IMG/VR virus record: IMGVR_UViG_3300036770_008729
Location: 62,001 to 126,000 of that record
Length of the DNA stretch: 64,000 nt
Reading direction: 5' to 3' (one strand)
In this document: positions 17,089 to 54,393 of the stretch, piece by piece
Numbering within the stretch: the first letter of the stretch is position 1
Layout: each line of letters begins with the position of its first letter
The notes under the pieces: generated by a model
Told to the model about the DNA's origin: nothing
The model's input: the letters and a program-made list of their open reading frames with translations, nothing else
Databases searched by the model: none
Position numbers and translations under genes: made by a program

Positions 17089-17511
17089 TTAAGCATTAAA
17101 ACCTGGTGGATCTATAAACAATTCTAAATTGGTGATATACCAATACTCTTCAAAGTCTTTTAATCTCTGTATATCAACTTTAAATCTATTCAATGATTCT
17201 AGAGATGTTCCCCAATAACCATAGGCATTTCCTTTACTACCATGTTTTTCTATAACATCTATCATTCTTAGAATAGTAGGTTTAACTTCAATCCAATAAG
17301 TAGATTTAGGGAAAATAAATTTGAATGTGTAAATTGCAATTCCATAGAATCTATCACACTCACACTTTACCTCACCTCCAGAAATAGGTTCATCTGTAAG
17401 TTCTCTACATATATCAACTAAATCTGAAAAAAGATTATCATTTAAATCTAAAAGATCTGGTCTAGTCAAAGTTAAAGATTCAAACTGATTATAACTTTTT
17501 ATTCTTTTCAT
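17089..17511 (-). CDS. CTS-like protein, apparent paralog of the 43714-47428 family
   Basis: MKRIKSYNQFES; LVDICRELTDE helix; AATATATA 5 nt upstream. Confidence 0.75.
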   Translation of the reverse strand: MKRIKSYNQFESLTLTRPDLLDLNDNLFSDLVDICRELTDEPISGGEVKCECDRFYGIAIYTFKFIFPKSTYWIEVKPTILRMIDVIEKHGSKGNAYGYWGTSLESLNRFKVDIQRLKDFEEYWYITNLELFIDPPGFNA

Positions 17512-18191: not shown

Positions 18192-18775
18192 ATATAATAA
18201 TACTTGGTCCTCCTGGTAGTGGTAAAGGAACCGTTTGTGAAAGACTTGTAAAAGATTTTGATTATCAACTAATCTGTGCTGGTGATATTTTAAGAAATGA
18301 AAAATCATCTGGTTCGGTTTTAGGTAACAAAATTGCCGAAATAATTGATAAAGGTAATTTAGTTCCTGATCAATTGATAACTTCTTTAATATTCAAAGAG
18401 TTTGAAAAACCAATTCGACTCGGTAGAAGTTACTTAATTGATGGATATCCAAGAACAGAAAAACAAGCTTTAGATTTAGACTCGATGATTAATGTCCCTA
18501 TTGTTATTTGGTTAGAAGTTTCAGATGAAACAACTATAAAAAGAAATTTGAAAAGAGGATTAACATCTGGGCGACCTGATGATGCAAATGAGGAAATTAT
18601 AAAACAAAGATTAGAGAATTATAAAAAACAATCCTTACCTTTGAAATCTTTCTATTCTGATATGATAGTAGAAATAGATGGAGAAGGAACAATTGAAGAG
18701 GTTTATAAAAGAGTAGTTGATACTCTTTTTGAAGATGTAAAAGAAATGAAAGATATTGAAGATATATTAGAATGA
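18188..18775 (+). CDS. adk: adenylate kinase (short LID)
   Basis: GPPGSGKGT P-loop, GNLVPD, DGYPR, RGLTSGRPDD. Confidence 0.92.
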   Translation: MNIIILGPPGSGKGTVCERLVKDFDYQLICAGDILRNEKSSGSVLGNKIAEIIDKGNLVPDQLITSLIFKEFEKPIRLGRSYLIDGYPRTEKQALDLDSMINVPIVIWLEVSDETTIKRNLKRGLTSGRPDDANEEIIKQRLENYKKQSLPLKSFYSDMIVEIDGEGTIEEVYKRVVDTLFEDVKEMKDIEDILE

Positions 18776-20040
18776 ATATTAAGAGATACATACCAACCTA
18801 TGAAGAAGCTGTAGAGTTATCCTCTTTTTCTATGTCACCTTTTTATGAGACTAAATTGGTGGTTGATGGTTATAATGTGTCTTTATTTAACTATCGCTTG
18901 GCAAACTATGGTGATTTCAAAAATCCACTTCCCGGTAAAGAAGGATTTGAAATGAGAGGTCTTACTTTTGTATTCAATACTGATGGTTCTCTATACAAAA
19001 GATATATCTTATTACATAAATTTTTCAACTTAAATCAAACTGAAGATTCTCTTTATTCGGAAGTAAAAGATTTAAAAATTAAAACTATACAGAATAAAGA
19101 AGATGGTTCTATTGCTTCTTTTGTAAAACTACCTAATGGTAGAGTAGTTGGTAAAACTAAAATGGGATTTGATAATCTTCAATCTGAGGCAATCAATAGA
19201 ATCTATAATTCTAACAAAGAACTAAAGAAATTTGTTAATTGGTCATTAGATAATGATATAGTTTCAATTTTCGAATATGTGTCACCATCTAACAGAATTG
19301 TTTTAAAATATAATAAAGAAGAATTAATACTTCTTAAACTTCGTTGTAATAAAACTGGTAAGTATTTAAATATGCCTGATTATACTTTTCAGATCGGTAA
19401 TTTAAAAGTGGCTGAGTTTGAAATGTCTACTACTTTAGATGACGTTTTAAAACTTAATGAAACTGAAATTGACAAAGAAGGTAGGGTAATTCATTTTGAA
19501 GGAGACCATTTTGTTAAAGTAAAGAATAATTGGTATGTATCATTACATGGATTACTTACTGAAGACATCTATAAAGAAAATGTTATTATTTCAAACATCT
19601 TAGATGATAAGATAGATGATATAATTGGTCAGATACCACAAGATGATACCTATACTCATAACAGAATTAATAAAATAATCTCTATTGTGAAAAAGTCGGT
19701 CAATGACAAAGTGTCAGAAATAAATGACGCTTATCTACATTTTGTCAATTTAGGTATATCTAAAAAAGATTATGCTATCAATTACAGAATTGATAATGAT
19801 AACTTTGTTTTTGTTATGAATATGATAAAGCATAATGAATTGAAATCTCTTTCTGAAAAAGAAGTAATTGACATTTATAAAGATTATGATTCTTATGAGA
19901 AATCTTTAATAAGAACTGATGTTTGGGAAATGGCTAAAGAGTTTATTAGAGATAAAACCAAAAGACTATTGATTGCTAGAGATTGGTTAAAGGAAAAAGA
20001 CGATAATTTATTTTTTATAGATTTAGAAGGTGATAACTAA
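18772..20040 (+). CDS. T4 Rnl1-like RNA ligase
   Basis: EMRGLTF, HKFFNLNQ, motif I KEDGS, FEYVSPSNRIV, EGRVI, VKVKNNWYVSLH. Confidence 0.88.
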   Translation: MNIKRYIPTYEEAVELSSFSMSPFYETKLVVDGYNVSLFNYRLANYGDFKNPLPGKEGFEMRGLTFVFNTDGSLYKRYILLHKFFNLNQTEDSLYSEVKDLKIKTIQNKEDGSIASFVKLPNGRVVGKTKMGFDNLQSEAINRIYNSNKELKKFVNWSLDNDIVSIFEYVSPSNRIVLKYNKEELILLKLRCNKTGKYLNMPDYTFQIGNLKVAEFEMSTTLDDVLKLNETEIDKEGRVIHFEGDHFVKVKNNWYVSLHGLLTEDIYKENVIISNILDDKIDDIIGQIPQDDTYTHNRINKIISIVKKSVNDKVSEINDAYLHFVNLGISKKDYAINYRIDNDNFVFVMNMIKHNELKSLSEKEVIDIYKDYDSYEKSLIRTDVWEMAKEFIRDKTKRLLIARDWLKEKDDNLFFIDLEGDN

Positions 20041-22429: not shown

Positions 22430-23671
22430 TTAATCTGATGAATATTCATCGTATCCACCACCAGTGTCTCTTAATTCTTTACCACTACCTTTTTCATAAT
22501 TATAAAGACATCCATCATCATCATTAAGATAAGACATAGTATCTAAATAAGGATATTGACTAAAATCTGAATCCTCTAAAACAACTTTTATCCTACACTT
22601 TTTAGTAGTTTTTCCATCTGTAATTGATTCATATTGATCCATATTTTGATTTCTTTTCCACCAGAATCCTTGTTTTTCAGCAAATTGTTTGAATAATTCA
22701 ACATCAGAATCTTGCATAGTATAAATTCTATCCATAAACTTTGCAGGTGTTCCATCAATTAAACAATTCCAAAGAATTGCTCTGCCTTTGATTTTTTCAG
22801 CAGTATATTTTTCACCTTCAATTTTACCATCATCTCCATAAAGTATCACTAATGAAACATTTGAATTTTCTGTGTAGATTTGAAAATATTCTTTTTCAAC
22901 GTCAGCCATACAAGAATTAGCAAGTGTCCCACCACCTTTTACATATCTATTATTGTCATACCAATAAGCAATATCATCACCTGTAGCTATATCAAATTGT
23001 TTAAGAATATCTTTTGCAAAGTCATAAGTCGCTTTATATTGATTTGTAAAATCTTCAATTTCTTTATCTGAAAATGTTATTTTAGCTGATCCTAATACTG
23101 CTCTAACTAATCTACCAATTCTAATTGGATTTCTAGATGTATTCCAAAGTCTCATATCTTCAGCTTCTGTTGGTTCCATCGCTACTTTATTGATAACACC
23201 TACTCTTGGATTATCAACACCATATTCTTGAAACATAACATAAATATTACCAGAACTTTGACTAACAGTTTCACCAGTGATGATACCTATTGTTCCTGAT
23301 TCGGGTGCCCAACATCCATATTTATCTTTATCATATCCTAAGGCTCTAAATAATCGATTATTGCCTGTACTATTTGTTAAGTATCTTCCGGATTCAATAA
23401 TTTTCCAAGTCTCAGGTCTATCTTTTGTAAGTTCTTGAACTTTTCTATCTGGAGTAAAACTTACCTCTTCTTTATTGTCTGTTATATCGATATAATTTTG
23501 TGTAAGTTTATCAACTTCTTTGTGATAAAGATTAAGTAAATCATTAGCAATTTTATTTGATTTCATTCTATTCAAAAGATTAATAAATTTCTTTGAATAA
23601 ATTAATTTCGATTCTAGTAATAGTTCATACAATTTACTTTCTGTAATATATTCTTGATATCTTTTAATCAT
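22430..23671 (-). CDS. 413 aa phage protein with CTS-like N-terminus and SCM...GRAILW...MDRIY...YPYLDT motifs
   Basis: Starts MIKRYQEYITES; conserved-looking C-terminal domain of unknown function. Confidence 0.8.
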   Translation of the reverse strand: MIKRYQEYITESKLYELLLESKLIYSKKFINLLNRMKSNKIANDLLNLYHKEVDKLTQNYIDITDNKEEVSFTPDRKVQELTKDRPETWKIIESGRYLTNSTGNNRLFRALGYDKDKYGCWAPESGTIGIITGETVSQSSGNIYVMFQEYGVDNPRVGVINKVAMEPTEAEDMRLWNTSRNPIRIGRLVRAVLGSAKITFSDKEIEDFTNQYKATYDFAKDILKQFDIATGDDIAYWYDNNRYVKGGGTLANSCMADVEKEYFQIYTENSNVSLVILYGDDGKIEGEKYTAEKIKGRAILWNCLIDGTPAKFMDRIYTMQDSDVELFKQFAEKQGFWWKRNQNMDQYESITDGKTTKKCRIKVVLEDSDFSQYPYLDTMSYLNDDDGCLYNYEKGSGKELRDTGGGYDEYSSD

Positions 23672-25567: not shown

Positions 25568-26182
25568 CTACTCCTCTTTATCTTCAGTTTCTATTCCTAA
25601 ATCTTCTTTATCATCAAACTTTTCATCAAGTTCTATTTTTAGTTCAATTAGAAACTCTTCTTTAATTTTCTTAATTTCTACATTTTTGGTAATTTGTCCT
25701 ATGATATCAAATGTATCAATATCATATTTTTTGAACTTTATATAACACTTTTGAATATCATCTTCACTAAAGTCCTTATTAGGATCTTTTGAGATACCTT
25801 CTTTCAAATCAATCATTATGATTAATGTGTAAGTAGCCATATCATCAGAAAATTTAACAGTGAGTGAATCATAAAGTTTAGAATATTTAGAAATTTCAGA
25901 ACTTTCTAATCTTACTCCCAAATCTTTGAAAGACATTTTTTCCTCTTCACCTTCTTCTTCGCCCTGTTCTTTTGCCTTTTTTATACTTTTTTCTTTTTTA
26001 GATTTCTTTTCCTCATCAAAGATATCATTTTGTGGATCTATAAAATCAGCAGATTCCTCATCATCCTCTTCAAACATTCTATCAATTTTTCTTTTGATCT
26101 TCATCAAAGCCATAGAAATATATGACTCAGGAGTATCATTCATACCCTCATTGATAAACTCTGTAAACTTTATTATTTTCAT
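25568..26182 (-). CDS. acidic protein with CTS-like N-terminus
   Basis: MKIIKFTEFINEG; AATATATA 6 nt upstream. Confidence 0.75.
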   Translation of the reverse strand: MKIIKFTEFINEGMNDTPESYISMALMKIKRKIDRMFEEDDEESADFIDPQNDIFDEEKKSKKEKSIKKAKEQGEEEGEEEKMSFKDLGVRLESSEISKYSKLYDSLTVKFSDDMATYTLIIMIDLKEGISKDPNKDFSEDDIQKCYIKFKKYDIDTFDIIGQITKNVEIKKIKEEFLIELKIELDEKFDDKEDLGIETEDKEE

Positions 26183-28422: not shown

Positions 28423-28439
28423 AAAATAGACCCAATTTT

Positions 28440-29702: not shown

Positions 29703-29703
29703 A

Positions 29704-32159: not shown

Positions 32160-32457
32160 TCGCTTTATCACTAATGATGGTATCGGTTATGTTAAATTTG
32201 AAGTTGGTGAGAAAGTCATAGTTGATGAAATTATCTATGGTGAAGAAAAAGTAGGAGTTGTTATCGATATAAATGCACGATATGTAGTTCCTGAGATTGA
32301 GCAGAGTTGGAAGGTAGAATACTTAGTTATATTCAATCTAAAGACAGGTGATAATATCTACATACAGCCTACTAAAAAATGGCTTACTGATGTGGATTTA
32401 AGAAAATGGTCATTGGATGAAGAAAGAGAATGGAAATTAAATAATATACTATCATAA
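32035..32457 (+). CDS. hypothetical KOW/SH3-like protein with REWKLNNIL tail (start uncertain)
   Basis: FEVGEKVIV; annotated start overlaps uvsE extensively. Confidence 0.55.
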   Translation: MQITYMKKLKLMVLTLIQKLRQKPKTLRYSDTENNFRYSKGDRFITNDGIGYVKFEVGEKVIVDEIIYGEEKVGVVIDINARYVVPEIEQSWKVEYLVIFNLKTGDNIYIQPTKKWLTDVDLRKWSLDEEREWKLNNILS

Positions 32458-32735: not shown

Positions 32736-33293
32736 ATGCAAATTAAAATACATATCGTACATTGTCAAGATTCTGATACACTTAGAATCATTCAAGACCA
32801 TGAATTAAAGAAAAACAAAACTCCTAAATTAAATGATGGATACATTTTAGTAAGGGAATGGTTTGATGATGATAGTTATGATTATAGAGAAGTTCCAGTT
32901 ACAATTGAACAAACCTTTTTAGTTATTACTAAAGGTGAGTTCATAAGAAATGATAAGAATTCATCAAAGTTAAATGCCTACTATATGTCTGGGGGTTTTG
33001 CCGAAGTCAATAGATTGGCTTATTCTTATTCTGTTAATGTTATTCTATGTGACGGAAATTGGACTTTATATGAAAATGACTTAGTTTATTCTAAGTCTGG
33101 AATAAAGGCAACTACAGGTAGTATGTATTCATATCATTTGAATGAGCCTGAGCAAATGTATATTGAGGATCTATTAGACTATGAAGTTTGGCAAAGTTTA
33201 AATCTTACAGATATTCTAAAATCCTATTTGACTCAATCCGAAATAAGAGATAGTAAAATTGATAAAATATTAGATAATGAGAGTGATACATAA
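32736..33293 (+). CDS. hypothetical protein with RDSKIDKIL tail
   Basis: 185 aa. Confidence 0.7.
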   Translation: MQIKIHIVHCQDSDTLRIIQDHELKKNKTPKLNDGYILVREWFDDDSYDYREVPVTIEQTFLVITKGEFIRNDKNSSKLNAYYMSGGFAEVNRLAYSYSVNVILCDGNWTLYENDLVYSKSGIKATTGSMYSYHLNEPEQMYIEDLLDYEVWQSLNLTDILKSYLTQSEIRDSKIDKILDNESDT

Positions 33294-33516
33294 ATCTAAT
33301 TTTGAAGACAGACCATATGTCTTAAAGACATCATTAATGTTTGTTGAGGATAATAAAATATGTGATGGGTGTGATAGACACGGAGTAAGATGTGCCTCAA
33401 TAAAACTCCTAAAAGGAGATGTTTCAATTCTTTGCCAAGATTGTATTGAGGGAATTTTAGATAGCTTAGACCCAGCTATAGTTAGAGATATTAAAATAGA
33501 TAAGATATTGGAATGA
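33277..33516 (+). CDS. zinc-finger protein with RDIKIDKIL tail
   Basis: CDGC...CQDC. Confidence 0.7.
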   Translation: MRVIHKSNFEDRPYVLKTSLMFVEDNKICDGCDRHGVRCASIKLLKGDVSILCQDCIEGILDSLDPAIVRDIKIDKILE

Positions 33517-33734
33517 ATGTAATTTGTATAAATAAAGGAAAGATAAAAAATCTCACAGAAGGTCGAAGATATCAAATAGTTAAAAAAAATAGTGGATTTC
33601 ACTTTGGATCTGATATTCCTTACTCCAATATGTGGATAATTAATGATGCTGGAATTGAAAAACACTATTCATCTAAAAGATTTTTAACAATCTCCGAATT
33701 CAGAAATATCAAAATAGATTCTATATTAAAATGA
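33513..33734 (+). CDS. small SH3-like protein with RNIKIDSIL tail
   Basis: VICI...LTEGRRY...NDAG...YSSKRF; paralog of next gene. Confidence 0.7.
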   Translation: MNVICINKGKIKNLTEGRRYQIVKKNSGFHFGSDIPYSNMWIINDAGIEKHYSSKRFLTISEFRNIKIDSILK

Positions 33735-33937
33735 TAGTTATTTGTACAGATGTGGACAATGTAGGTTCTGATATGAAATTATCACTTACAATAGGGAAAT
33801 CATATAAGGTCATTAGAGAAAATAATATAGGATTTTATTTAGAAGATGACCGTGGTTCTATTCAATGGTATTCTAAATGGAGGTTCAGTAGGTCAGAGTG
33901 GAGAGATAATCAAATAGATAAAATATTATTTACTTAG
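33731..33937 (+). CDS. small SH3-like protein with RDNQIDKIL tail
   Basis: VICT...LTIGKSY...DDRG...YSKWRF. Confidence 0.7.
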   Translation: MIVICTDVDNVGSDMKLSLTIGKSYKVIRENNIGFYLEDDRGSIQWYSKWRFSRSEWRDNQIDKILFT

Positions 33938-35094
33938 AATTTTTCTATCTCAATTCTTTTAATCTCTTCACCGAGTTCTTTTCCTTTAAATCCTTTATCC
34001 ATTAAGTCCTTAACCGATACGGTTGGTTTCCAATCAACAAATTTAATTATATTAATGTCTTTGATTTTACAGACATCAATCCATTCTAATATAGTAGAAT
34101 CTTTTATATGACAACCTAATTTGAGTTTATAAATATCAATTAATTGTTCTGGTTTGAATGATTGTAGTCTTAATAAAAATTCAACTTTGTTTGCTACTTC
34201 TCCTTCAATTTTGTATTCATCTATTAATTTTTTTGATAACCCTACAGGATTTTCTAATTTAAATAAATGTGATATCACTACAACAAAATCTTTACTATTT
34301 ATTGTAATTGTGTTGATAGAAGCTCCTGGAAAAACTTCATCCCACATATCAAATTTTGTAAAGAAATTTAAGTAATGATTAAAATCTTTCGCCTGAGACC
34401 AAGCCTTCTTAAACTCTTCCCATATTCTTTCCGCTGATATTCTTTTAATCTTACCAGTCTCTGGATCTATATTAGATAGTTGTTTTCTCTTTTCAATTGC
34501 CCTTTCCGTATCTTTATGTAGAGGATGTCCATATCTCGATGCGAATCTAAAGGCTCTTAAAATTCTAAGTGAATCTTCATCAAATCTTTCGACTGGATCA
34601 CCAACCATACGAGTTATTCCACTTTCTAAATCTTGCCTTCCACCTACCAAATCAACCACTTCTTTTTTATCTAAATCATAAAATAAAGAGTTGTAAGTGA
34701 GGTCACGACGCTTGACATCATCTTCAATGGTAACACCTAATTTAACTTCAGGATTTCTTCCCTTAGAAATGTCTTGTCTAAAAGTAGCGATTTCCATTCC
34801 ACCTGGTTGATCGTCAGTGTAGACAACTACTACACCGAAAGCTTTACCTTGTAAGTTAAAGTCATAGTTGTATGATTGTAGTATTTTAATAACCTCATCA
34901 GGAAGAGCATCGGTTGCTAAGTCAAAGTCTTTTGGTTTATCACCAGTTAGGAAATCACGAACTGATCCACCAACTAAATATAGTTTTTTACCAGCTTTTC
35001 TAAAAATGTTATTCAAATCTTTAACTGATTTTGGAATATAATCCCACATATCCGTTTTTGACTCCAAAAACTGTTCATACTTTTTTAATTTCAT
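33934..35094 (-). CDS. cca: class II CCA-adding tRNA nucleotidyltransferase with CTS-like N-terminal extension
   Basis: LVGGSVRD, DFDLAT, EIATFR, DDVKRRDLT, FDEDSLRILRAFRF, ISAERIWEE; starts MKLKKYEQFLES. Confidence 0.9.
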   Translation of the reverse strand: MKLKKYEQFLESKTDMWDYIPKSVKDLNNIFRKAGKKLYLVGGSVRDFLTGDKPKDFDLATDALPDEVIKILQSYNYDFNLQGKAFGVVVVYTDDQPGGMEIATFRQDISKGRNPEVKLGVTIEDDVKRRDLTYNSLFYDLDKKEVVDLVGGRQDLESGITRMVGDPVERFDEDSLRILRAFRFASRYGHPLHKDTERAIEKRKQLSNIDPETGKIKRISAERIWEEFKKAWSQAKDFNHYLNFFTKFDMWDEVFPGASINTITINSKDFVVVISHLFKLENPVGLSKKLIDEYKIEGEVANKVEFLLRLQSFKPEQLIDIYKLKLGCHIKDSTILEWIDVCKIKDINIIKFVDWKPTVSVKDLMDKGFKGKELGEEIKRIEIEKF

Positions 35095-35350
35095 AGAGTA
35101 TATATTCTCTAAATAATTTAGAGAAATTAGTTTTTCTCCTTTTTTCTTTCTTCTGGTGTTAAAAGTCCCTTTCCAAAGTTTTTTATTCTTTCTTCGTATC
35201 TGGTTTTGACTCTTTCAGAAATAGGAACTGGTGTTCCTTCATCATAGATGGTGATTCTTATACAATAGAATTCAAAGAAGGTGAAAAAACAATCAAGAAA
35301 AAATCTGAAATCGTTAAAAAGAAAAACCAGTAATAAAGATTGATACTATA

Positions 35351-35390
35351 AAAAAATTTGGGTATTCGTATCCACGAATACCCAAAAAAT
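35351..35390 (-). terminator. intrinsic terminator downstream of nusG
   Basis: ttgggtattcgt-atcc-acgaatacccaa 12 bp stem flanked by A/T runs. Confidence 0.8.
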
Positions 35391-35413: not shown

Positions 35414-35965
35414 TTATGATTTTTTATCGATTTGCATTACACTCAATTCAATTGGTGTTTTTCTACCAAAGATTAATACAGAAACTTTTACTTTTTGATC
35501 TTTAATTTCATCAATAGTTCCAATGAACCCATTAAACGGACCATCCATAACTTTGATTTCTTCACCAATTACATAAGTAGTTTCTGGTTGTTTTGTCTGA
35601 GATTCTTCATGAAGACCTAACATTTTATTTACCTCATCTCTAGAAAGAGGTTGGATGGTTCCACTTCTATCAGTTAAGAATCCGGTAGCACCACTCATTC
35701 CTTTAAGATGGTATTTTAATTCACCAATGGCGTTTGTTTCAACGAAAACATAACCGGGGAACATTACTTTTTCCCTAGTTACTTTTTTTCCGTTTTTCAT
35801 AAAAAAACTTTTTTCCATTGGAACGATTACCTGACCGATTTTACCTTGAAGGTCTCCTTTTTCAGCTTCTTTGATAAGTCTATCGCCAACTGATTTTTCT
35901 CTCATTGCTTGCGCTCTTACTACATACCATTTCATGTTAGTAGTTGTTTCTGTAATTGTACTCAT
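35414..35965 (-). CDS. nusG: transcription elongation factor NusG (NGN + KOW)
   Basis: KWYVVRA, MFPGYVFVE, GEEIKVMDGPFNGF, VSVLIFGRKTPIEL. Confidence 0.95.
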   Translation of the reverse strand: MSTITETTTNMKWYVVRAQAMREKSVGDRLIKEAEKGDLQGKIGQVIVPMEKSFFMKNGKKVTREKVMFPGYVFVETNAIGELKYHLKGMSGATGFLTDRSGTIQPLSRDEVNKMLGLHEESQTKQPETTYVIGEEIKVMDGPFNGFIGTIDEIKDQKVKVSVLIFGRKTPIELSVMQIDKKS

Positions 35966-39328: not shown

Positions 39329-40870
39329 TTAAATAATCCTTAAGTATCTCGGAGTTTTGAACTTATCGGTTTCGATTGATAGAGCGTATCTCATTATTTT
39401 TGTAATCAAAGAATTAGATTCTTTGTGACTTACATTATGTAGTTGTAATATAGCAAGAATAATTTGCATAGACTGAATTCTTGATATAAGTCTATTTTCA
39501 CTTTTTGAAATATCAGTTCCTCTTTTTATAGGCTCAACTATTACTAATTGTCCACCTATCGAATCTCTATATTTTTTACACTGTGTAATAAGTTCCATAG
39601 TATAACTTTTTAACTGGTCAATGCTAAGTTGTTTTAATTCATTATATGATTGAAGATTTTGAATTTTATAACCAGAGCTAATTTTCTGATCAATGAATCT
39701 TTTAATTGCATTAAAAGAGATTTTACCATGTCTTGATGTTGAACCTTCTACTTCACCGTCTACATTGACATTATTTCCTGTATTAGAAGAATCAAAATTA
39801 ATTTTTCTATCTTTTATATCCACATCTTTGTTATTTCTATGTTTCCAAATAGAAGTTGTAGATATTTTCGAACCAATACCTTTTAGGTCAGATCCAACAT
39901 GAAATGATTTAATGAAGAAATCTGGTGGATTTTTATCAACCATTGAATTGGTTAATACTCCAAAACGTGATCCAATTTTTTTAAGAGATACTCCGATTAA
40001 TAATTTTTCATCAAATAAACTATTCATTTCGTCTTTTAACTTATGGATGTCTGTACACTCATCAATTCGATTATTTACTTGTTCTACATTATTTCTTGAT
40101 ACTAAATACATATCCGCTGGACAAAACTTAGATATGTTTATATCAGACCAACCACCATCTTTTGCAAATTTTTTATATTTCTTTTCTATATGAACATAAG
40201 GGGAACTATTTCCTACAAATGAGGCGTGATAAATCTCATATAAGTCATTAGTATTAACATATTCTTCTTTCCAGATTCTATTTGGAATCTTACAAAAAGT
40301 ATTAACCCAATCTTCATCCTGTAAAAAGTCATCTAGTAATTGTTCATTTACTTCAACTTTTTCTGGTGTGAAAACCAACTTTTGCATTTGAATATACTTA
40401 TAGAAGAATTCCCTCATATTTCTTGAAGTCAATAATTTATCAGGTAATGCTTGTTTTATACCAAAAAATAAACACTGAACTGATTCAAAGTTTCTAACCA
40501 TTACACCAGCACCCGATGATCCAAACTCTTTAGTCTTTTTGAATTGATTGATTTTGAACTCTTTACCATCTTTACTCATGAACACAGGAATATATCTACT
40601 ACCTGGTTTGAAATAAGACTTAGCCTTATCTATATCGTATTCATCATCTGTAGTAATTTTATCAATAGCAATCTCTGGTTCAACCCATTGTGAGTCGGAC
40701 TTCATTTTATCAACCTTAATTTTCTGATTGCTAGTTGTGGTAAGTTCTTCTTTGTTTTTAATTTTGGTTATAAGAACATCTCCTCTTTTTTGACCATTTA
40801 TCAATTTACCAAGTTCTGTTAAATCAAGTTCTGTTTCTTCTAGGAATTTTTTGAATCTCAACAATTTCAT
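39329..40870 (-). CDS. 513 aa protein with CTS-like N-terminus and PD-(D/E)XK-like nuclease motif
   Basis: MKLLRFKKFLEE; CPADMYLV...LIGVSLKK; AATATATA 5 nt upstream. Confidence 0.6.
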   Translation of the reverse strand: MKLLRFKKFLEETELDLTELGKLINGQKRGDVLITKIKNKEELTTTSNQKIKVDKMKSDSQWVEPEIAIDKITTDDEYDIDKAKSYFKPGSRYIPVFMSKDGKEFKINQFKKTKEFGSSGAGVMVRNFESVQCLFFGIKQALPDKLLTSRNMREFFYKYIQMQKLVFTPEKVEVNEQLLDDFLQDEDWVNTFCKIPNRIWKEEYVNTNDLYEIYHASFVGNSSPYVHIEKKYKKFAKDGGWSDINISKFCPADMYLVSRNNVEQVNNRIDECTDIHKLKDEMNSLFDEKLLIGVSLKKIGSRFGVLTNSMVDKNPPDFFIKSFHVGSDLKGIGSKISTTSIWKHRNNKDVDIKDRKINFDSSNTGNNVNVDGEVEGSTSRHGKISFNAIKRFIDQKISSGYKIQNLQSYNELKQLSIDQLKSYTMELITQCKKYRDSIGGQLVIVEPIKRGTDISKSENRLISRIQSMQIILAILQLHNVSHKESNSLITKIMRYALSIETDKFKTPRYLRII

Positions 40871-43713: not shown

Positions 43714-44640
43714 ATGAAGTATTTAAAAACTTTTGAAGAAATTTATTATGATTCTAGAAAACCGGTTGATGGTTATATTGACGCTAATGATTTAGTTGGT
43801 CAAAGATTGTGGTTTCATACTAATAGAACACACCGAAACAATGGTTGGAATGGTATGATTGGTATTTATGATACTACAAGAAGTGGTAGAAAAATAGGAT
43901 TAGCGGGTAAATATACAAATGAAGTTAGATTAACTTCTCCAATTTTCTTTCAGACATCAGAGGCAGGTGCTGAAAATATAAAATCTAAAGGTGATAGAAC
44001 TTTAATTGCTGGGGTTTCTGGTGTGGTGATTCCGACTGATAGTAATACTTCTGGAATGCAAAAAATCACTTACAATCCTTTTGATGTCGGGTATTTTCAT
44101 TTACTAGATGATAGTGGTAAAAAGGAAATAGTTTCTGCTGATGAAGTTTATTTTGTGGCTTCCGAAGATGGAAAATGGGAAATATGGGCAATGAATCCAA
44201 AGTTTAAATTATTAAAAGAGAATAGACACTACCGTGGAGAACATCCTAAATCAATGCCAGATGAAGATAAAGATTATATCAATGATATTTTACTTGAACT
44301 TCAGTTATTGGATATGAGATATGAAATTGTAGAGTGTTGGTATCACAAAGACGAATCTGACCAAACGGTTGGTAATATACATAAACATAGTCGTCCTGAA
44401 GAACTGATAAAGTCATATAGGTCGATTAAAGTAAGTTTATATGATAAGGAAAGGAGATTTTTTAGAATAGATGATATAGACTCCGTTTTAACAAGTCTTA
44501 AGGTATGGTCATCGGGTAAATATGAAATTGATTTATCTTGGCCAAACGAAATGATTTATTTACCAATGGAAGATTTTATAGATGAGTTTGGTGGTGAAGA
44601 ATTATATACAATAGACATTTACATTTACAAAAGAAATTAG
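43714..44640 (+). CDS. two-domain CTS-like protein
   Basis: MKYLKTFEE; N-domain with HTNRTH...EAG...ITYNPF; C-domain YINDILLEL like neighbours. Confidence 0.8.
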   Translation: MKYLKTFEEIYYDSRKPVDGYIDANDLVGQRLWFHTNRTHRNNGWNGMIGIYDTTRSGRKIGLAGKYTNEVRLTSPIFFQTSEAGAENIKSKGDRTLIAGVSGVVIPTDSNTSGMQKITYNPFDVGYFHLLDDSGKKEIVSADEVYFVASEDGKWEIWAMNPKFKLLKENRHYRGEHPKSMPDEDKDYINDILLELQLLDMRYEIVECWYHKDESDQTVGNIHKHSRPEELIKSYRSIKVSLYDKERRFFRIDDIDSVLTSLKVWSSGKYEIDLSWPNEMIYLPMEDFIDEFGGEELYTIDIYIYKRN

Positions 44641-44643
44641 GAG

Positions 44644-45186
44644 ATGAAATACTTAAAGAAATATAAATTATTTGAATCCACTCCTGATGAAGAATGGAGT
44701 ACAGTAGAAGAAAGAGAAAATACTATTAGACATATATCACTTGAATTTGAAGACGTTGGACTTATATGTAGTATTTCTAAAGTCAGAAAAGATGTTGAAT
44801 TAGAACCAGACCGTTATAATGGTAAAACAAAAACTGATCTCTTTTTAGAAGTTTATTTGTCAAGAAATTGGTATTCACCAAATAGAGAAATACCTGGTGT
44901 AGTAAATCCTGAAGGTGGTTACCCTGGTAATCTTATTTTCTGGTATGAAATCAAAAATATAATCATTAGAATTGCTAAATGGTATTATGAAGTAGAGAGC
45001 ATTTATGATCCTATAAGTAAAGATGCTGTTTATAGAGATGAAAAGGAGAAATCACCTTTGAGATTCTTTGGTAGTGGAATAGAGATGTTGATTGGTTGTA
45101 GTAAAGAAGAGGATTTTGAGAAATTAGGTGATTTTATTTCATTTACTAATTTTAGAATAATGATTAAAATATCTGAACAAGTATAA
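44644..45186 (+). CDS. CTS-like protein
   Basis: MKYLKKYKLFES; IRHISLEFED. Confidence 0.8.
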   Translation: MKYLKKYKLFESTPDEEWSTVEERENTIRHISLEFEDVGLICSISKVRKDVELEPDRYNGKTKTDLFLEVYLSRNWYSPNREIPGVVNPEGGYPGNLIFWYEIKNIIIRIAKWYYEVESIYDPISKDAVYRDEKEKSPLRFFGSGIEMLIGCSKEEDFEKLGDFISFTNFRIMIKISEQV

Positions 45187-45190
45187 AGTT

Positions 45191-45694
45191 ATGAAGTGGA
45201 TAAAATTATATGAAAATTTCGATGATAACATTTCTATTGAAAAAGATGTTGAAGATATATTCTGGGACTTAGAGGGATTTAAAGTTGAGATTTCATTCTG
45301 GGTAAATGGTGCTCGTGGTGGTTTTTTGGCAAGTGATGAGTCTGGATCGCAAAAATATGGACCAATTGCAGATAATGGTAAATTATACTTAAAAGTTGAG
45401 GTCAAAAAAATAGAACCACCTGGTAACTTCCTTACAAAAGATGGTTTTAATTGGATAGAAACTAAATCTTACTTTAATAGATTGAGAAGTTTTTTAAGCG
45501 AGTATAGTCCAGTTAAATATAAAATCAACACTATGGTATTTAGCCACGCACCTCGTTTTAGTATTGTTAGTAACGCTGAAATACACGATACTTATCAAAC
45601 ATCATTTGATTATGTTGATTCTAAATATATAGAAAAAGATTTTACAGATAGGAATACCTTAACATCGGTATATTATTTTTTTGAAAGATTATGA
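45191..45694 (+). CDS. CTS-like protein
   Basis: MKWIKLYENF; VEDIFWDLE. Confidence 0.8.
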   Translation: MKWIKLYENFDDNISIEKDVEDIFWDLEGFKVEISFWVNGARGGFLASDESGSQKYGPIADNGKLYLKVEVKKIEPPGNFLTKDGFNWIETKSYFNRLRSFLSEYSPVKYKINTMVFSHAPRFSIVSNAEIHDTYQTSFDYVDSKYIEKDFTDRNTLTSVYYFFERL

Positions 45695-46341
45695 AATACT
45701 TAAAATTATTTGAAGAAGCCACTAATGTTCCTGATTACTTTTTACCATTAGAAAGTATCAATCATTATTTAGATCCGAAATCTGGTGTGATTTATCCTAT
45801 ATTAAAATCTGGTGGATATGATGAAAGAAATGATTTTGATTTAGAAGCCTTTACTTCTGGTCCTGAAGAAGCTCAAATTCCTGGAGATGCTCCAACTGGA
45901 AATATTTCAGATGAAGATCAAATGATTATAGACCAGTATCGTCAGTCAACTGAAAAGTATTTCAAAGATAAAATTAATTGGAGTTTAATAGATTTAGCAA
46001 AAGAAAGGTCTTTAGAAATAATTGATAATGGAGGTAGGTTATTAATCTCTGTTTCTATTAAAGTTTCAAATACCTCATCATTTTTTATCTATTATGAGGA
46101 TATAACTCACACAAGACCTAAACAATTCTGGAATATGTATTTTGAAGATTCAATGTCTATATTGTCGAAATGTACAGGCGAATTAATTTATAATTTTTTA
46201 TTATCAACAAAGTTAAATCAAGCTAACCTCCCTTGGGGTGAGGATTATATATCTTATAAAACAGGTGATACAGAAACCAGTGAATTGGTCAGACTACTTC
46301 ATAAGTTATATCCTGAAGAGAATATAAAGGCGATGAATTAA
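45691..46341 (+). CDS. CTS-like protein
   Basis: MKYLKLFEE. Confidence 0.8.
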   Translation: MKYLKLFEEATNVPDYFLPLESINHYLDPKSGVIYPILKSGGYDERNDFDLEAFTSGPEEAQIPGDAPTGNISDEDQMIIDQYRQSTEKYFKDKINWSLIDLAKERSLEIIDNGGRLLISVSIKVSNTSSFFIYYEDITHTRPKQFWNMYFEDSMSILSKCTGELIYNFLLSTKLNQANLPWGEDYISYKTGDTETSELVRLLHKLYPEENIKAMN

Positions 46342-46343
46342 TA

Positions 46344-46793
46344 ATGAAACACCTAAAAAAATATAGATTATTTGAATCACAGAAGTATAATATGGGTGAT
46401 TTTATGGATATCATTTATGATTTGCGTCTTAGGTGTTATGACTTTAACGATGGTGGTTGCACTTGGAAAATTCTACCGGAAGAAGAAATACAAATCAACT
46501 TACTTAGACTTGCCTATAATAGAACTATTGAGTCTAAAGGCGTTGTATTTAAGTTATTAATTGATATACGAAATATAAAATCAGATGATGATCTTAATTC
46601 TCAATCTCTACCTAATTGGTTTATCAATAAATGTCTAGAAATAGAATCAATGATGAGAATGTATGGATTTAAAACTCTACCTTCTATCAAAAGACCAACT
46701 GACTGGGAACATTTTGACACAATTGACGAACTAAGTGAGGCAAGTGGTCTTTTTAGAGAAGTTCAACTTCTTTTCAGAAAAATTGGAGAGTAG
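46344..46793 (+). CDS. CTS-like protein
   Basis: MKHLKKYRLFES; FMDIIYDL. Confidence 0.8.
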   Translation: MKHLKKYRLFESQKYNMGDFMDIIYDLRLRCYDFNDGGCTWKILPEEEIQINLLRLAYNRTIESKGVVFKLLIDIRNIKSDDDLNSQSLPNWFINKCLEIESMMRMYGFKTLPSIKRPTDWEHFDTIDELSEASGLFREVQLLFRKIGE

Positions 46794-46866
46794 AAGATGG
46801 GGGAGTGGACATCTACTTTTATGATTGGCATTTCTCGCTAATGCTAGCCCCTAATTCCCAATCAAC
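46789..46866 (-). ncRNA. candidate small structured RNA
   Basis: GC-rich for this genome; stems GATTGG/CCAATC, GCATT/AATGC, AGTAG(AA)GATG/CATCTACT; minus-strand TATATTTG at 46878-46885. Confidence 0.35.
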
Positions 46867-46924
46867 CAATTTATTTCCAAATATAATAATTAAATTTATA
46901 TATAACTAAAATTAATTTCTTATT

Positions 46925-47005
46925 ATGTTCAGTTCGGGAAACATCTTCATTATGATTTTTGGCATTCTGTTAGCCTTAGGATTAATTTTTAATTTTAATA
47001 TATAA
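46925..47005 (+). CDS. putative 26 aa single-TM peptide
   Basis: MFSSGNIFIMIFGILLALGLIFNFNI; below track cutoff. Confidence 0.45.
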   Translation: MFSSGNIFIMIFGILLALGLIFNFNI

Positions 47006-47008
47006 GTT

Positions 47009-47428
47009 ATGAGATACTTAAAGTCATATAAAGTATTTGAGATAAGAGAAAGTCCTTATTTAGATGGATCGGATAGTCCTATGAAAGTTAAATATGGAAA
47101 AGAAGTTATTGATAAGTGTGATGAGGTGATTGAGTATATCAAACAGATTATGTTAAACTTAGAAGATTTGAAATTTTATTGTTATGTGAATTACACACCT
47201 TTAACAAAAGTTTATCAGGAAGTTGAGCCTATTTTATTTGTTGATATAAGTCAGAATCCAGAAATACCATTAGATGAAGAAGCAAAAACAGAACTTGAGT
47301 ATACAATAGAATCAATTAAAAAATATATTGATTCAAAACATTTTTTCCTAACTGATTATCGTTTTAATGATAGAGGTGTTGAAAAGTATTCAGCAAGATT
47401 CTATCCAAAACCTGAAAAGCAAAACTGA
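47009..47428 (+). CDS. CTS-like protein
   Basis: MRYLKSYKVFE; IKQIMLNLED; AATATATA 4 nt upstream. Confidence 0.8.
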   Translation: MRYLKSYKVFEIRESPYLDGSDSPMKVKYGKEVIDKCDEVIEYIKQIMLNLEDLKFYCYVNYTPLTKVYQEVEPILFVDISQNPEIPLDEEAKTELEYTIESIKKYIDSKHFFLTDYRFNDRGVEKYSARFYPKPEKQN

Positions 47429-52718: not shown

Positions 52719-53141
52719 ATGAAAAATCTATTCTTAGATGATATAAGAATTCCAAAAGATGCAATCGGCCTAGTTGATTCTAAATTAAATCAATTTTACT
52801 GGTCTCAAGATTGGTCTATTGTTAGAAGTTATGATGAATTCGTTCAATTTATTACCGAAAAAGGTTTGCCCGACTTTATATCATTTGACCACGACTTAGC
52901 AGACGACCACTATAACGACCTTTTTTCTGATAAAAATTGGGCAAAAAAAAATAGTGATATAAAATTAGACTACAATTCATATAAAGAAAAAACTGGATAC
53001 GAGTGTGCTAAATGGTTAGTAGATTGGTGTGTTGATAATGGATTGAAATTGCCAGATTATGTTGTTCATTCTGCTAATCCAGTTGGTAAGAGTAATATAA
53101 TTTCTTATTTAGAAAATGCTAAAAAGCATCTTTCATTATGA
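52719..53141 (+). CDS. cyclic-phosphate processing receiver-domain protein
   Basis: LFLDDIR.P, ISFDHDL, KTGYECAKWL, VHSANPVG; TATATTTG 4 nt upstream. Confidence 0.8.
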   Translation: MKNLFLDDIRIPKDAIGLVDSKLNQFYWSQDWSIVRSYDEFVQFITEKGLPDFISFDHDLADDHYNDLFSDKNWAKKNSDIKLDYNSYKEKTGYECAKWLVDWCVDNGLKLPDYVVHSANPVGKSNIISYLENAKKHLSL

Positions 53142-53156
53142 TAGACATAATTCATT

Positions 53157-53184
53157 AAAAACCTCCTTTTTAGGAGGCTTTTTT
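53157..53184 (+). terminator. intrinsic terminator
   Basis: cctcct-tttt-aggagg followed by T-run. Confidence 0.75.
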
Positions 53185-53209
53185 ATTTTATATCCTTATA
53201 TTTGTCATA

Positions 53210-53626
53210 ATGAATATAATTTTTACTGACATAGATGGTGTTCTTAATACGGTTAATAGAAATGATTGGAATAAAAATTCAATAGACCTATATAATAAAT
53301 TGTGCAAAGAATTTGACTTAAAGGCCGTTATATCTTCTACTTGGAGACTAAACCACACTAAGTCACAATTGCAAAATATATTCAATGAAAAAGGTGTAGA
53401 AGTGGAAATAATTGATTTTACAGATTCATTTCCGGATGAAGGTAGAGGAAGAGAAATTGAAGATTGGATTTTTAATAATTCTCATAGCAAATTCATCATA
53501 ATTGATGATAGTGTTAGAGATATAATTGCTTGGGGATTGCCAAATGTAGTTAGATGTAGAGGTTGGATTGGATTCTCACAAGAAGAATATGAATTGGCAA
53601 GAGAATTATTACTTAAAACTAACTAA
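53210..53626 (+). CDS. HAD-superfamily phosphatase (Swiss-Army-Knife RNA-repair-like)
   Basis: IFTDIDGVLN, ISSTWR, RGREI, IIIDD. Confidence 0.85.
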   Translation: MNIIFTDIDGVLNTVNRNDWNKNSIDLYNKLCKEFDLKAVISSTWRLNHTKSQLQNIFNEKGVEVEIIDFTDSFPDEGRGREIEDWIFNNSHSKFIIIDDSVRDIIAWGLPNVVRCRGWIGFSQEEYELARELLLKTN

Positions 53627-53826: not shown

Positions 53827-54393
53827 ATGAAACATCTAAAAAACTATAAGTTATTTGAAAATTTAAATACACCTATCAGTATAGAACAATTCTTATCTGA
53901 AATCAATTTCCCTCAAGAATTAAGAACACAAGTAATAAACTGGTGGAATTTAAACAGAGGTGAATTTATAATTCATTGTTTTAATTTCTCATCACCTCAA
54001 CCAATAGCTGGTGTTTTTCTTGGTGTAGATGAAATTGCTATCAATAAAAGATTACCAATGCCACCTCATATTAAATTATTTTTAGCTCTTCATGAATCTG
54101 GACATTGTAATCAACACAGAGAAGGAAGATTTATGACTGGTTATTATGACACCGTAATTGCTGGTAACAAACCAGCCTTTTTACAAGCCTATATGGATCT
54201 TGAAAAAGAAGCTAATGACTATGCTTTTAATTCATTAAGAGAGATGGGATTAGAAAGATTGTATCAATTTGAGGAATCTAGATTAAGAGGAAATCAAAGA
54301 GCAGGTGAAATGGTTTGGTCAATGATGACTGCTGATATAGCGAGATTCAATCCTAATGATTTTATTGACCTTTTGAAAAAACAAATACTTTAA
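53827..54393 (+). CDS. HExxH zinc metallopeptidase-like protein with CTS-like N-terminus
   Basis: MKHLKNYKLFEN; ALHESGHCNQH; EKEANDYA; AATATATA (53815-53822) 4 nt upstream. Confidence 0.75.
   Translation: MKHLKNYKLFENLNTPISIEQFLSEINFPQELRTQVINWWNLNRGEFIIHCFNFSSPQPIAGVFLGVDEIAINKRLPMPPHIKLFLALHESGHCNQHREGRFMTGYYDTVIAGNKPAFLQAYMDLEKEANDYAFNSLREMGLERLYQFEESRLRGNQRAGEMVWSMMTADIARFNPNDFIDLLKKQIL

Follow-up and report, generated by a model that had tools for sequence, protein, structure and literature searches.

Why does a tRNA nucleotidyltransferase encoded by a huge phage begin with residues that do not belong to the enzyme, and do those residues direct it into the capsid? The gene lies in a 64,000-nucleotide stretch (the window) of a 281-kb contig that represents a fragment of a huge Bacteroidetes-infecting phage of the 634-642-kb Mahaphage group. 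A sequence-only reading had described the gene as a CCA-adding enzyme with an N-terminal extension and an upstream motif unlike host-type promoters, and had inferred that the protein is made late, packaged, and injected to repair tRNA 3' ends immediately on infection, before phage transcription. The observation was confirmed by our analysis, whereas the interpretation was only partly supported.

The CCA gene and its predicted enzyme

The gene and its immediate surroundings consist of the following features:
33934..35094 (-), gene for a 386-aa class II tRNA nucleotidyltransferase (CCA-adding type), starting MKLKKYEQFLES
35059..35094 (-), codons 1-12, the N-terminal tag MKLKKYEQFLES
35099..35108 (-), promoter-like motif AGAATATATA (contig consensus TTAATATATA), ending 4 nt before the ATG
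35357..35386 (-), terminator-like hairpin (13-bp stem plus T run) between the NusG-like gene and the putative CCA promoter, which makes the CCA gene its own transcription unit
35414..35965 (-), NusG-like gene upstream (Pfam NusG, E 3e-17, and KOW); a NusG gene also lies near the CCA gene in the distant relative L054

Reading the minus strand upstream of the gene gives GAGAATATATACTCT-ATG, so that AATATATA occupies positions 35099-35106 of the plus strand, 4 nt before the ATG at 35094, as the sequence-only reading had stated. The start of the enzyme core, however, had been placed at about residue 25 and required correction, since KAGKKLYLVGG comprises residues 33-43 and the Pfam PolyA_pol head domain starts at residue 38. 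The conserved core of this subfamily starts at about residue 19-21 (IPxS[VI]..L), because many homologs begin exactly there. The true extension is therefore about 19 residues, of which the first 12 form the tag. A search of the 319-nt gap upstream of the gene revealed no small ORF of note, and an Rfam search of the window found nothing.

The protein was assigned to its family by a PolyA_pol hit in Pfam (E 7e-32; 110.8 bits against a cut-off of 23) and by PHROG 2244, tRNA nucleotidyltransferase (E 3e-60). The catalytic motifs of the class are all present: G42-G43-x-V45-R46-D47, D56/D58, R129-R130-D131, E173-D174-x-x-R177 and E222-R223...E227. Motif A (GGxVRD and the two catalytic Asp, DxD) reads LVGGSVRD at residues 40-47 and DFDLAT at residues 56-61. 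In an alignment of 90 homologs V41, G42, R46, D47, D56, D58, R129, R130, D131, D148, R177 and E227 were invariant, while G152, D155, E173, D174, E222 and R223 were 90% or more conserved; these positions cover motif B (RRD), motif C, motif D (the EDxxR nucleotide template) and motif E. An AF2 model (pLDDT 94.5, pTM 0.89) predicts the full head-neck-body-tail fold. Foldseek comparison of the model gave full-length CCA enzymes as the best PDB matches (4x4w, 6q52 and 1miv), with E values of 1e-17 to 1e-19 and TM scores of 0.65-0.68 to 4x4w, 6q52 and 6qxn over the whole length.

We considered whether the protein might instead be a poly(A) polymerase, or an enzyme adding only A or only CC. The NCBIfam scores for CCA (PRK13299, 151 bits against a cut-off of 290) and PcnB (TIGR01942, 150 bits against 306) were nearly equal and both fell below their cut-offs, the protein belonging to a diverged, mostly metagenomic subfamily. 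E. coli poly(A) polymerase was the best sequence hit in the PDB and was among the top ten structural hits. However, where the E. coli enzyme has GRRFRLAHV, the basic stretch after motif A that is the signature of poly(A) polymerases, the phage protein has FNLQGKAFG in the HMMER alignment, and the loop between motifs A and B that CC-only enzymes lack is present. Together with the structural matches, and with the tRNA genes described next, this makes the alternative very unlikely, and we hold the CCA-type identity with high confidence, although the addition of C, C and A to tRNA is inferred from sequence, predicted structure and gene context alone.

Of 27 tRNA genes on the contig, 26 lack an encoded CCA, the exception being tRNA-Asp. 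The plain job of the enzyme would thus be to build or rebuild the 3' CCA end of tRNAs. Genes of RNA repair lie on the same contig, including an AAA_33/polynucleotide-kinase-like protein and these features of the window:
18772..20040 (+), T4-type RNA ligase 1 (Rnl1) gene (Pfam RNA_lig_T4_1, E 1e-14)
52719..53626 (+), cREC receiver and HAD_SAK_2 RNA-repair genes (Pfam cREC_REC, E 8e-22, and HAD_SAK_2, E 5e-22), both behind host-type TAnnTTTG promoters, with ATATATTTGTACC and CCTTATATTTGTCATA upstream

Phage-encoded enzymes of this family are already known in jumbo and T4-like phages. Homologs were found in 508 phage records, many of them annotated as tRNA nucleotidyltransferase, and CCA-adding enzymes are listed among the translation genes of huge phages (PMC7162821). 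The cultured examples that we looked at (Atu_ph07) start at the core helix without the tag, while the enzyme described here carries the tag of its clade and its own copy of the promoter-like motif.

A peptide tag shared by unrelated proteins

The N-terminal extension is not private to the CCA gene. Between 40 and 45 of the 373 proteins on the contig start with M-K-[YH]-[IL]-K-x-[YF]-x-x-F-E or a close variant. The pattern [YF]..F[LI]E occurs 8 times in 78,632 aa, and 5 of these are in the first 14 residues of a protein, while a stricter tag expression matches 38 initiator Met positions against 2 of 1,381 internal Met. Depending on the expression used, 38-44 carriers were counted. Paralogy as the source of the shared N-terminus was rejected, since the carriers show no similarity to each other once 14 residues are removed. 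Besides the CCA gene, tagged genes of the window include:
17089..17511 (-), tagged 140-aa gene (MKRIKSYNQFES) with the motif 5 nt upstream
22430..23671 (-), tagged 413-aa protein starting MIKRYQEYITES, the N-terminus closest to T4's MKTYQEFIAE; orthologs in LR745206 and LR756502 keep both the tag and AATAATATATA 22-25 nt upstream
25568..26182 (-), tagged 204-aa gene (MKIIKFTEFINE) with the motif 6 nt upstream
39329..40870 (-), tagged 513-aa protein (MKLLRFKKFLEE) with TTAATATATA 5 nt before its ATG, matching only PHROG 1462, of unknown function
43714..47428 (+), run of six tagged genes: MKYLKTFEE, MKYLKKYKLFES, MKWIKLYENF, MKYLKLFEE, MKHLKKYRLFES and MRYLKSYKVFE
53827..54393 (+), tagged 188-aa gene (MKHLKNYKLFEN) with TTAATATATA 4 nt upstream

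Pfam and PHROG scans of the ten largest tagged proteins gave almost nothing as to their function. In the AF2 model of the CCA enzyme residues 1-10 have a mean pLDDT of 50, and the tag appears as a short, amphipathic and flexible peptide whose conserved residues are spaced aromatics and a Glu.

On the CCA enzyme the tag is kept as MK[LI]K+Y..FLES in 119 homologs at 73-83% identity, in the 47% ortholog and, as MIKKFKLFEER, in a 39% relative. The sequence-only reading had asked whether other CCA homologs lack the extension, and many do: 29 of 84 diverged single-domain homologs start without any extension, as does the enzyme of the cultured phage Atu_ph07. The tag DNA pattern occurs 19-30 times in each of LR745206, LR756502 and LR756504, while a reversed-pattern control gave 0-1. 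It is very likely, therefore, that the tag is a modular peptide, M-K-x-[IL]-K-x-[YF]-x-x-F-(L)-E, placed by this phage group on about a tenth of its proteins.

Because the tagged genes are mostly ORFans with their own promoter copy, scattered over the contig and in runs, a mobile cassette of promoter and first codons might have recombined in front of new genes, leaving a peptide without function. We regard this as very improbable. Synonymous codon use in the tag equals the genome average and synonymous codons vary freely, so the constraint is on amino acids rather than bases, and the DNA could not serve as recombination homology. Retention of the peptide on orthologs over 39-58% identity indicates purifying selection on the peptide itself.

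A promoter-like motif before tagged genes

ATATATA sits exactly 4 nt before the ATG of 31 genes, 5 nt before 12, and 6-7 nt before about 10 more, and the position-locked motif was found before 54 of 373 genes at 3-7 nt, with a second group at 17-28 nt. Of 87 TAATATATA sites, 71 lie within 60 nt upstream of a gene start in the same orientation. Of the 29 tagged genes that have an upstream gap, 27 carry the motif, against 65 of 186 untagged genes. Other genes use host (Bacteroidetes-type) TAnnTTTG promoters, and the contrast drawn in the sequence-only reading between the CCA gene and the receiver and HAD genes was upheld.

The late timing proposed for the CCA gene is not shown. The motif precedes genes for a topoisomerase II subunit, RNase H/FEN, HNH endonuclease and glycosyltransferase as well as tail-fibre-like genes, and in the close relative LR745206 TTAATATATA lies about 20 nt upstream of the portal gene; it thus marks a phage-specific class and not a proven late class. 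The gp55-dependent late promoter of T4, TATAAATA, is likewise a single AT-rich element without a -35 box, placed before structural genes and distinct from host promoters. It differs in sequence, however, and TATAAATA had 16 upstream hits on the contig with no preferred distance. The element found here also often lies only 4 nt from the ATG, and no gp55-like gene was found on the contig. Searches for RNA evidence of timing or 5' ends listed only DNA metagenomes (subsurface, freshwater) and no RNA run; subsurface or freshwater samples hold this phage at full word share.

These positions suggested that the tag might serve translation rather than the finished protein, with the nascent peptide or an unstructured AU-rich start raising initiation or early elongation on leaderless or short-leader mRNAs in a host without Shine-Dalgarno use. 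In support of this, the motif lies 4-7 nt before the ATG in 54 genes, so that leaders must be very short, no Shine-Dalgarno sequence is visible before the CCA gene, and tag and near-ATG motif co-occur (15 of 38 against 39 of 335, p 5e-5). However, the average codon choice within the tag and the nature of its conserved residues, which are not merely AU-rich codons, speak against it. In addition, 15 tagged genes sit inside operons, less than 25 nt from the gene before, and only 1 of them has the motif, while the LR745206 CCA ortholog keeps the tag without the promoter. This explanation appears unlikely.

Resemblance to the capsid targeting sequence of T4

The tag resembles the capsid targeting sequence of T4, MKTYQEFIAE, which is carried by the internal proteins IPI-III and Alt and cleaved off after targeting (PMC8442874; PMC5694885); T4 ipII and ipIII start MKTYQEFI. 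Both are N-terminal peptides of 10-12 residues shared by otherwise unrelated proteins of one phage, start with MK, have spaced aromatic and aliphatic residues, and end at a Glu in a hydrophobic-x-Glu context, as seen when MIKRYQEYITES and MKLKKYEQFLES are compared with the T4 sequence. Tags scored above untagged N-termini against YQEFIAEA (p 5e-8), and the CCA N-terminus ranked in the top 9 of 373. The T4 prohead protease cuts after Glu in an L/I-x-E context; 32 of 40 tags have hydrophobic-x-Glu ending at residue 11-14, against 68 of 329 untagged proteins, and the CCA tag has F-L-E at residues 9-11, cleavage being a matter of inference from these sequences.

Several features differ, however. 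There are about 40 carriers per 281 kb instead of a handful, and forty or more cargo species, enzymes among them, is far beyond any known targeting-sequence set. The carriers are acidic (median pI 5.5), unlike T4's basic internal proteins, and are up to 560 aa long. The likeness spans only 7-10 residues, and most tags need a 3-residue shift to align, since the main tag form, MKYLKLFEDFEE, has three extra residues before the aromatic core. The tag form is absent from T4, Tenacibaculum phage pT24, and the uncultured Lak-B8 and 735-kb genomes, all with related capsid genes.

The 634-642-kb relatives carry a T4-type module of portal, putative protease-scaffold and capsid genes. In LR745206 and LR756502 we found a portal (PF07230, E 1e-58), a capsid protein (PF07068, E 1e-26 to 1e-28) and, next to it, a weak Peptidase_S77 match (E 1e-4 to 1e-5) that is below Pfam's cut-off. 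The putative protease ORF continues into about 14 scaffold repeats, NIAYSEYIAENLDK, which contain YSEYIAE. Tagged genes lie inside this module, directly after the capsid gene. On the contig of the window, by contrast, no portal, protease, capsid or sigma gene was found: there was no hit for Peptidase_S77, Gp23 or Portal_T4, nor with the capsid and protease proteins of the relatives, and PHROG scans of 20 large ORFs found only baseplate wedge, tail-spike-like and virion structural proteins. The head-core argument therefore rests on relatives with 47-73% identical orthologs.

Other loading systems offer partial parallels. In the giant phages phiKZ, 201phi2-1 and SPN3US many ejection and inner-body proteins are targeted by N-terminal propeptides and cut after Glu by a T4-related prohead protease, and enzymes (the virion RNA polymerase) are packaged and injected (PMC5694885). 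Those propeptides are mostly over 100 residues long and have no shared short sequence, whereas here the signal would be a compact, nearly invariant 12-mer. Encapsulin cargo-loading peptides resemble the tag in working principle only, a short terminal peptide being enough to load diverse enzymes into an HK97-fold shell; they are usually C-terminal, unrelated in sequence and not cleaved, and no membership is claimed.

Alternatively, the enzyme may stay in the cytoplasm and the tag may be a handle for another phage machine. It could be recognised by the phage's own DnaK/DnaJ chaperones or its Lon-like ATP-dependent protease for timed folding or removal, or could recruit proteins to a cytoplasmic assembly site. 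A basic-flanked hydrophobic stretch such as K-Y-L-K-L-F is the kind of segment Hsp70 binds, DnaK and DnaJ genes are in the window, an ATP-dependent protease gene (PHROG 4871, E 6e-251) is on the contig, and the single promoter class of the tagged proteins would suit joint regulation. No 12-residue N-terminal chaperone or degradation tag shared by 40 phage proteins is known, however, and this reading does not explain the likeness to T4's targeting sequence and to the clade's scaffold repeat, or the tagged genes inside the head module. We consider it unlikely, though less so than the translational and shuffling explanations.

Interpretation

What the analysis establishes is the family and predicted fold of the enzyme, the existence and modularity of the tag class, selection on the peptide, the link between tag and promoter class, and a T4-type head module in close relatives. 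Promoter function, timing of expression, docking, cleavage, packaging, injection and the CCA-adding activity itself are inferred, as this phage group has no cultured member and no virion proteome, N-terminal sequencing or RNA data were found for it.

The best reading of the tag, which we hold only tentatively, is that it plays the role of T4's capsid targeting sequence. In this view a short amphipathic propeptide would dock the protein onto the scaffolding core of the prohead and the T4-type prohead protease would cut it off after the Glu, so that the enzyme would be carried in the virion and could enter the next cell with the DNA. The tagged genes, including the CCA gene, would be transcribed from TTAATATATA, which on the CCA gene lies so close to the ATG that the mRNA must be leaderless or nearly so. 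The case for a targeting signal is stronger than could be seen from the gene alone, because the tag is shared by about 40 unrelated proteins and the clade has a T4-type head core. That the enzyme repairs tRNA before phage transcription remains pure inference.

It is possible, though on present evidence less likely than not, that a subgroup of the largest known phages uses one compact 12-residue address label to load forty or more different proteins into the prohead and deliver them with the DNA, the cargo including enzymes such as a CCA-adding enzyme and a kinase. The label would mimic the repeat unit (YSEYIAE) of the phage's own scaffold, which would also explain where T4's targeting sequence came from.

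Even if packaging is wrong, two findings stand that do not appear in the literature searched: a peptide tag on a tenth of a phage proteome, and a two-class promoter layout, host TAnnTTTG against phage TTAATATATA, with near-leaderless starts. No paper was found to hold any of six tag strings, and papers on capsid targeting in jumbo phages describe long propeptides and not this tag. If the tag is a capsid-loading signal, it would be the largest and most uniform protein-cargo system known in any phage, and a 12-residue loading tag would also be a practical tool. The injected proteome of uncultured huge phages could then be read straight from sequence, as any protein that starts with the tag, and it would show that translation-repair enzymes can be delivered ready-made. 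The likeness between the tag, T4's targeting sequence and the scaffold repeat gives a testable idea of how such signals work, namely by co-assembly with the scaffold through mimicry.

The CCA gene and its surroundings

The gene of interest was found to stand alone as a transcription unit, and the features that define it are as follows.

33934..35094, minus strand: a 386-aa ORF starting MKLKKYEQFLESKTDMWDYIPKSVKDLNNIFRKAGKKLYLVGGSVRD
35099-35106, + strand numbering: AATATATA, four bases before the start codon, the minus strand reading GAGAATATATACTCT-ATG
35386-35357: a terminator-like hairpin with a 13-bp stem, following the NusG-like gene upstream

The next gene downstream is convergent, so that together with the upstream hairpin this leaves the CCA gene on its own. 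The sequence-only reading had placed AATATATA 4 nt upstream of this enzyme gene, and that observation held. Next to the CCA gene, at 32736-33937 (+) and possibly also at 32035-32457, are four or five small genes without a Pfam family that end in a shared C-terminal motif, [FW]R[DN]x[KQ]ID[KS]IL (SEIRDSKIDKIL, VRDIKIDKILE, FRNIKIDSILK, WRDNQIDKILFT).

The enzyme and its predicted fold

The Pfam PolyA_pol head domain covers residues 38-160 (E value 7e-32), and PHROG 2244, tRNA nucleotidyltransferase, gave a hit with an E value of 3e-60. NCBIfam places the protein equally near CCA enzymes and PcnB, below all curated cut-offs, and a poly(A) polymerase identity was considered as a rival. In an alignment of 90 homologs down to 36% identity the catalytic residues are conserved; V41, G42, R46, D47, D56, D58, R129, R130, D131, D148, R177 and E227 are invariant, and G43, V45, G152, D155, E173, D174, E222 and R223 are 90% or more conserved. 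The AlphaFold model is confident (pLDDT 94.5, pTM 0.89), and its best PDB matches are full-length CCA-adding enzymes (human mitochondrial 4x4w, Planococcus 6q52/6qxn and Bacillus 1miv), with E. coli poly(A) polymerase close behind. We are highly confident that the enzyme is a class II CCA-type nucleotidyltransferase, although the CCA-adding activity itself is inferred.

The 281-kb contig that holds the window (G000:C1) carries 27 tRNA genes, at contig positions 151777-151940 and 245674-264410. In most of these the discriminator base is followed by a single C and then A or T, so one C of CCA is encoded, and only tRNA-Asp has the full CCA. A CCA-adding activity therefore has an obvious use. The contig also carries RNA-repair genes, namely a T4-type RNA ligase 1, a cyclic-phosphate-processing receiver domain, a 'Swiss army knife' HAD domain, and an AAA_33/polynucleotide-kinase-like protein. 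Phage CCA enzymes are common (508 phage records) and have been noted in huge phages (PMC7162821).

The N-terminal extension

The conserved core of this subfamily begins at about residue 19-21 (IPxS[VI]..L). Of 84 single-domain representatives at 36-50% identity, 29 start within 8 residues of that Pro, while 42 have 14 or more extra residues, and 23 of those 42 look tag-like. The enzyme of the cultured Agrobacterium phage Atu_ph07 starts at the core. In the model, residues 1-10 have a mean pLDDT of 50 and form only a short helix at 6-11. The extension is thus real and dispensable for the predicted fold. The peptide is nevertheless strongly kept, as MK[LI]K+Y..FLES in 119 homologs at 73-83% identity, as MIITKYAKFLES at 47% identity, and as MIKKFKLFEER at 39% identity in a 28%-GC contig. 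In the distant relative (locus L054), the gene right after the tagged CCA gene (11209-11610) encodes an ART-PolyVal ADP-ribosyltransferase domain, and genes for a ribosome hibernation factor, an aminoacyl-tRNA synthetase and an Acb1-like protein lie nearby.

A tag shared across the proteome

The extension proved to be one copy of a proteome-wide tag, which had not been visible to the sequence-only reading. On the 281-kb contig, 38-44 of 373 called proteins start with M-[KR]-[YH]-[IL]-K-x-[YF]-[EK]-x-F-E-[ENS] or the close variant M-K-x-K-K-Y-x-x-F-L-E, whereas the expression matches only 2 of 1,381 internal Met. Once the first 14 residues are removed, none of these proteins matches another (blastp, E<1e-4), and the tag is therefore modular. 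That the CCA enzyme carries a modular tag is, in our view, almost certain. It is possible that the shared N-terminus is merely a by-product of gene shuffling; however, codon choice in the tag equals the genome average (AAA 0.80 against 0.78, TTT 0.73 against 0.75, GAA 0.78 against 0.78), indicating that selection acts on the peptide. Most carriers are ORFans of 80-560 aa, and the few with a family are enzymes: this one, an AAA_33 kinase-like protein and a GATase. One tagged protein, encoded at window 22430-23671 (-), has a C-terminal domain (residues 177-408) that is a multi-copy family, with 7-8 places in the 634- and 642-kb genomes, 14-15 in the 636- and 735-kb genomes, and relatives in Cellulophaga phages, which fits a Flavobacteriia-type host.

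The tag DNA pattern occurs 25 times on this contig, and 19, 30 and 24 times in the 634-, 642- and 636-kb genomes LR745206, LR756502 and LR756504, respectively. It occurs 0-1 times in T4, Tenacibaculum phage pT24, Lak-B8 and the 735-kb genome, and a reversed-pattern control gave 0-1. Of two IMG/VR contigs, G001 and G002 (347,857 and 267,884 bp), G001 is rated 100% complete with inverted terminal repeats, yet it has no portal or capsid match and shares several identical tag-bearing gene starts with the 636-kb genome LR756504. It looks like a fragment of a genome of that type.

A further rival reading is that the tag is a handle for the phage's own chaperone or protease systems. The phage encodes its own DnaJ and DnaK, and an ATP-dependent protease; these, along with a bacterial stress or sporulation-linked module found inside this phage, are located as follows.

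Window 13819-14895 (-) and 20408-22273 (+): DnaJ and DnaK
Contig G000:C1:27826-29994 (+): a 722-aa ATP-dependent protease (PHROG 4871)
Window 26500-31200 (+): a complete PrkA (AAA_PrkA plus PrkA C-terminal domain) / DUF444 (YeaH) / SpoVR gene trio, each with a Pfam E value below 1e-140

Two putative promoter classes

Two classes of promoter-like element were found across the contig. The first, TTAATATATA (about 100 genes), lies exactly 4 nt (31 genes), 5 nt (12 genes) or 6-7 nt before the ATG, and in a second group 17-28 nt before it. Of 87 TAATATATA sites, 71 are within 60 nt upstream of a same-strand gene start. Genes without this motif often have TATATTTGTA, the Bacteroidetes host-type TAnnTTTG element (about 20 genes), and these include the receiver and HAD genes (in the window, for example, upstream of 52719 and 53210). 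The contrast that the sequence-only reading had drawn between the CCA gene and the host-type promoters of the receiver and HAD genes is therefore correct. Among genes with an upstream gap of 25 nt or more, 27 of 29 tagged genes carry the phage motif, against 65 of 186 untagged genes.

The motif precedes tail-fibre-like genes, a virion-protein operon and, in LR745206, the portal gene. A family of tail-fibre-like proteins (window 63007-63576 (+) and contig 207164, 232593, 238923, 274073 and 276824) shares an N-terminus, MP[KR]R[LI][LF].+..G.....P.G, and each sits behind TTAATATATA at 17-25 nt. However, the motif also precedes topoisomerase II, FEN/RNase H, HNH and glycosyltransferase genes. We read it as the phage's own non-early promoter; late expression is plausible but is not shown. 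For the 4-7-nt class, the conserved tag fixes the start codon, and we therefore infer that the transcript can have at most a few untranslated bases, which implies leaderless or near-leaderless mRNAs. The tag might then be an aid to the translation of leaderless mRNAs, which is another of the rival readings. The LR745206 CCA ortholog has lost the motif but kept the tag. LR745206 encodes a sigma-70-family protein, while none was found on this contig.

Comparison with the T4 capsid targeting sequence

The internal proteins of T4 join the scaffolding core through a 10-residue N-terminal sequence, MKTYQEFIAE, which the prohead protease removes after the Glu, and foreign proteins fused to it are packaged (PMC8442874; PMC5694885). 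T4 ipII and ipIII start MKTYQEFI. The tag described here has the same place, length and make-up; one window protein starts MIKRYQEYITES and the CCA enzyme starts MKLKKYEQFLES. Tags score higher against YQEFIAEA than untagged N-termini or internal windows (p 5e-8 and 2e-9, respectively), and the CCA N-terminus is in the top 9 of 373. Hydrophobic-x-Glu ending at residue 11-14 was found in 32 of 40 tags, although this test is partly circular, because the tag definition already allows an acidic residue there.

The close relatives have a T4-type head module in T4 order. It comprises a portal (E value 1e-58), then a 699-727-aa ORF, read as a protease-scaffold fusion, whose N-domain weakly matches, below threshold, the T4 protease gp21 and whose C-part carries about 14 tandem 14-residue repeats of NIAYSEYIAENLDK (LR745206 198546-200669, loci L039/L035, and locus L038 in LR756502), then a gp23-like capsid protein. 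The core of that scaffold repeat, YSEYIAE, is itself close to YQEFIAE of T4, and tags score above background against it (p 4e-5). In LR745206 two tagged genes lie directly behind the capsid gene.

Other data argue against this reading. The contig that holds the window, which is rated 94% complete and 'provirus', lacks all head genes; it breaks off in repeats and inside genes at both ends, so it is a fragment despite that completeness estimate. A 168-aa ORF on this contig (187321-187827 (-), MKNLSLFELYD...) matches residues 24-91, the N-terminal propeptide region, of the gp23-like capsid protein of the relatives (E value 9e-6, 36% identity); the contig has no capsid gene. In addition, the protease match is sub-threshold, the sequence likeness is short, the carriers are acidic, the number of carriers has no precedent, and searches for proteome or transcript data found none.

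Interpretation

The interpretation offered by the sequence-only reading, of a late-made enzyme tagged for packaging and injected to repair tRNA 3' ends, is supported only in part. The analysis itself establishes the modularity of the tag, the selection on the peptide, the association of the tag with the phage motif and, with high confidence, the class of the enzyme. The role of the motif as a promoter, its timing, the near-leaderless transcripts, the CCA-adding activity, and the cleavage, packaging and injection of tagged proteins are inferences from sequence. That the tag is a T4-like prohead-core targeting propeptide is the best single reading, but it is held tentatively and at less than even confidence. 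Targeting-type tags and packaged enzymes are already known, but in the literature searched we did not find described a uniform 12-mer on a tenth of the proteome of a huge phage, a CCA enzyme included. Although it has no direct support, the idea that the injected enzyme repairs tRNA ends before phage transcription is compatible with the RNA-repair gene set.
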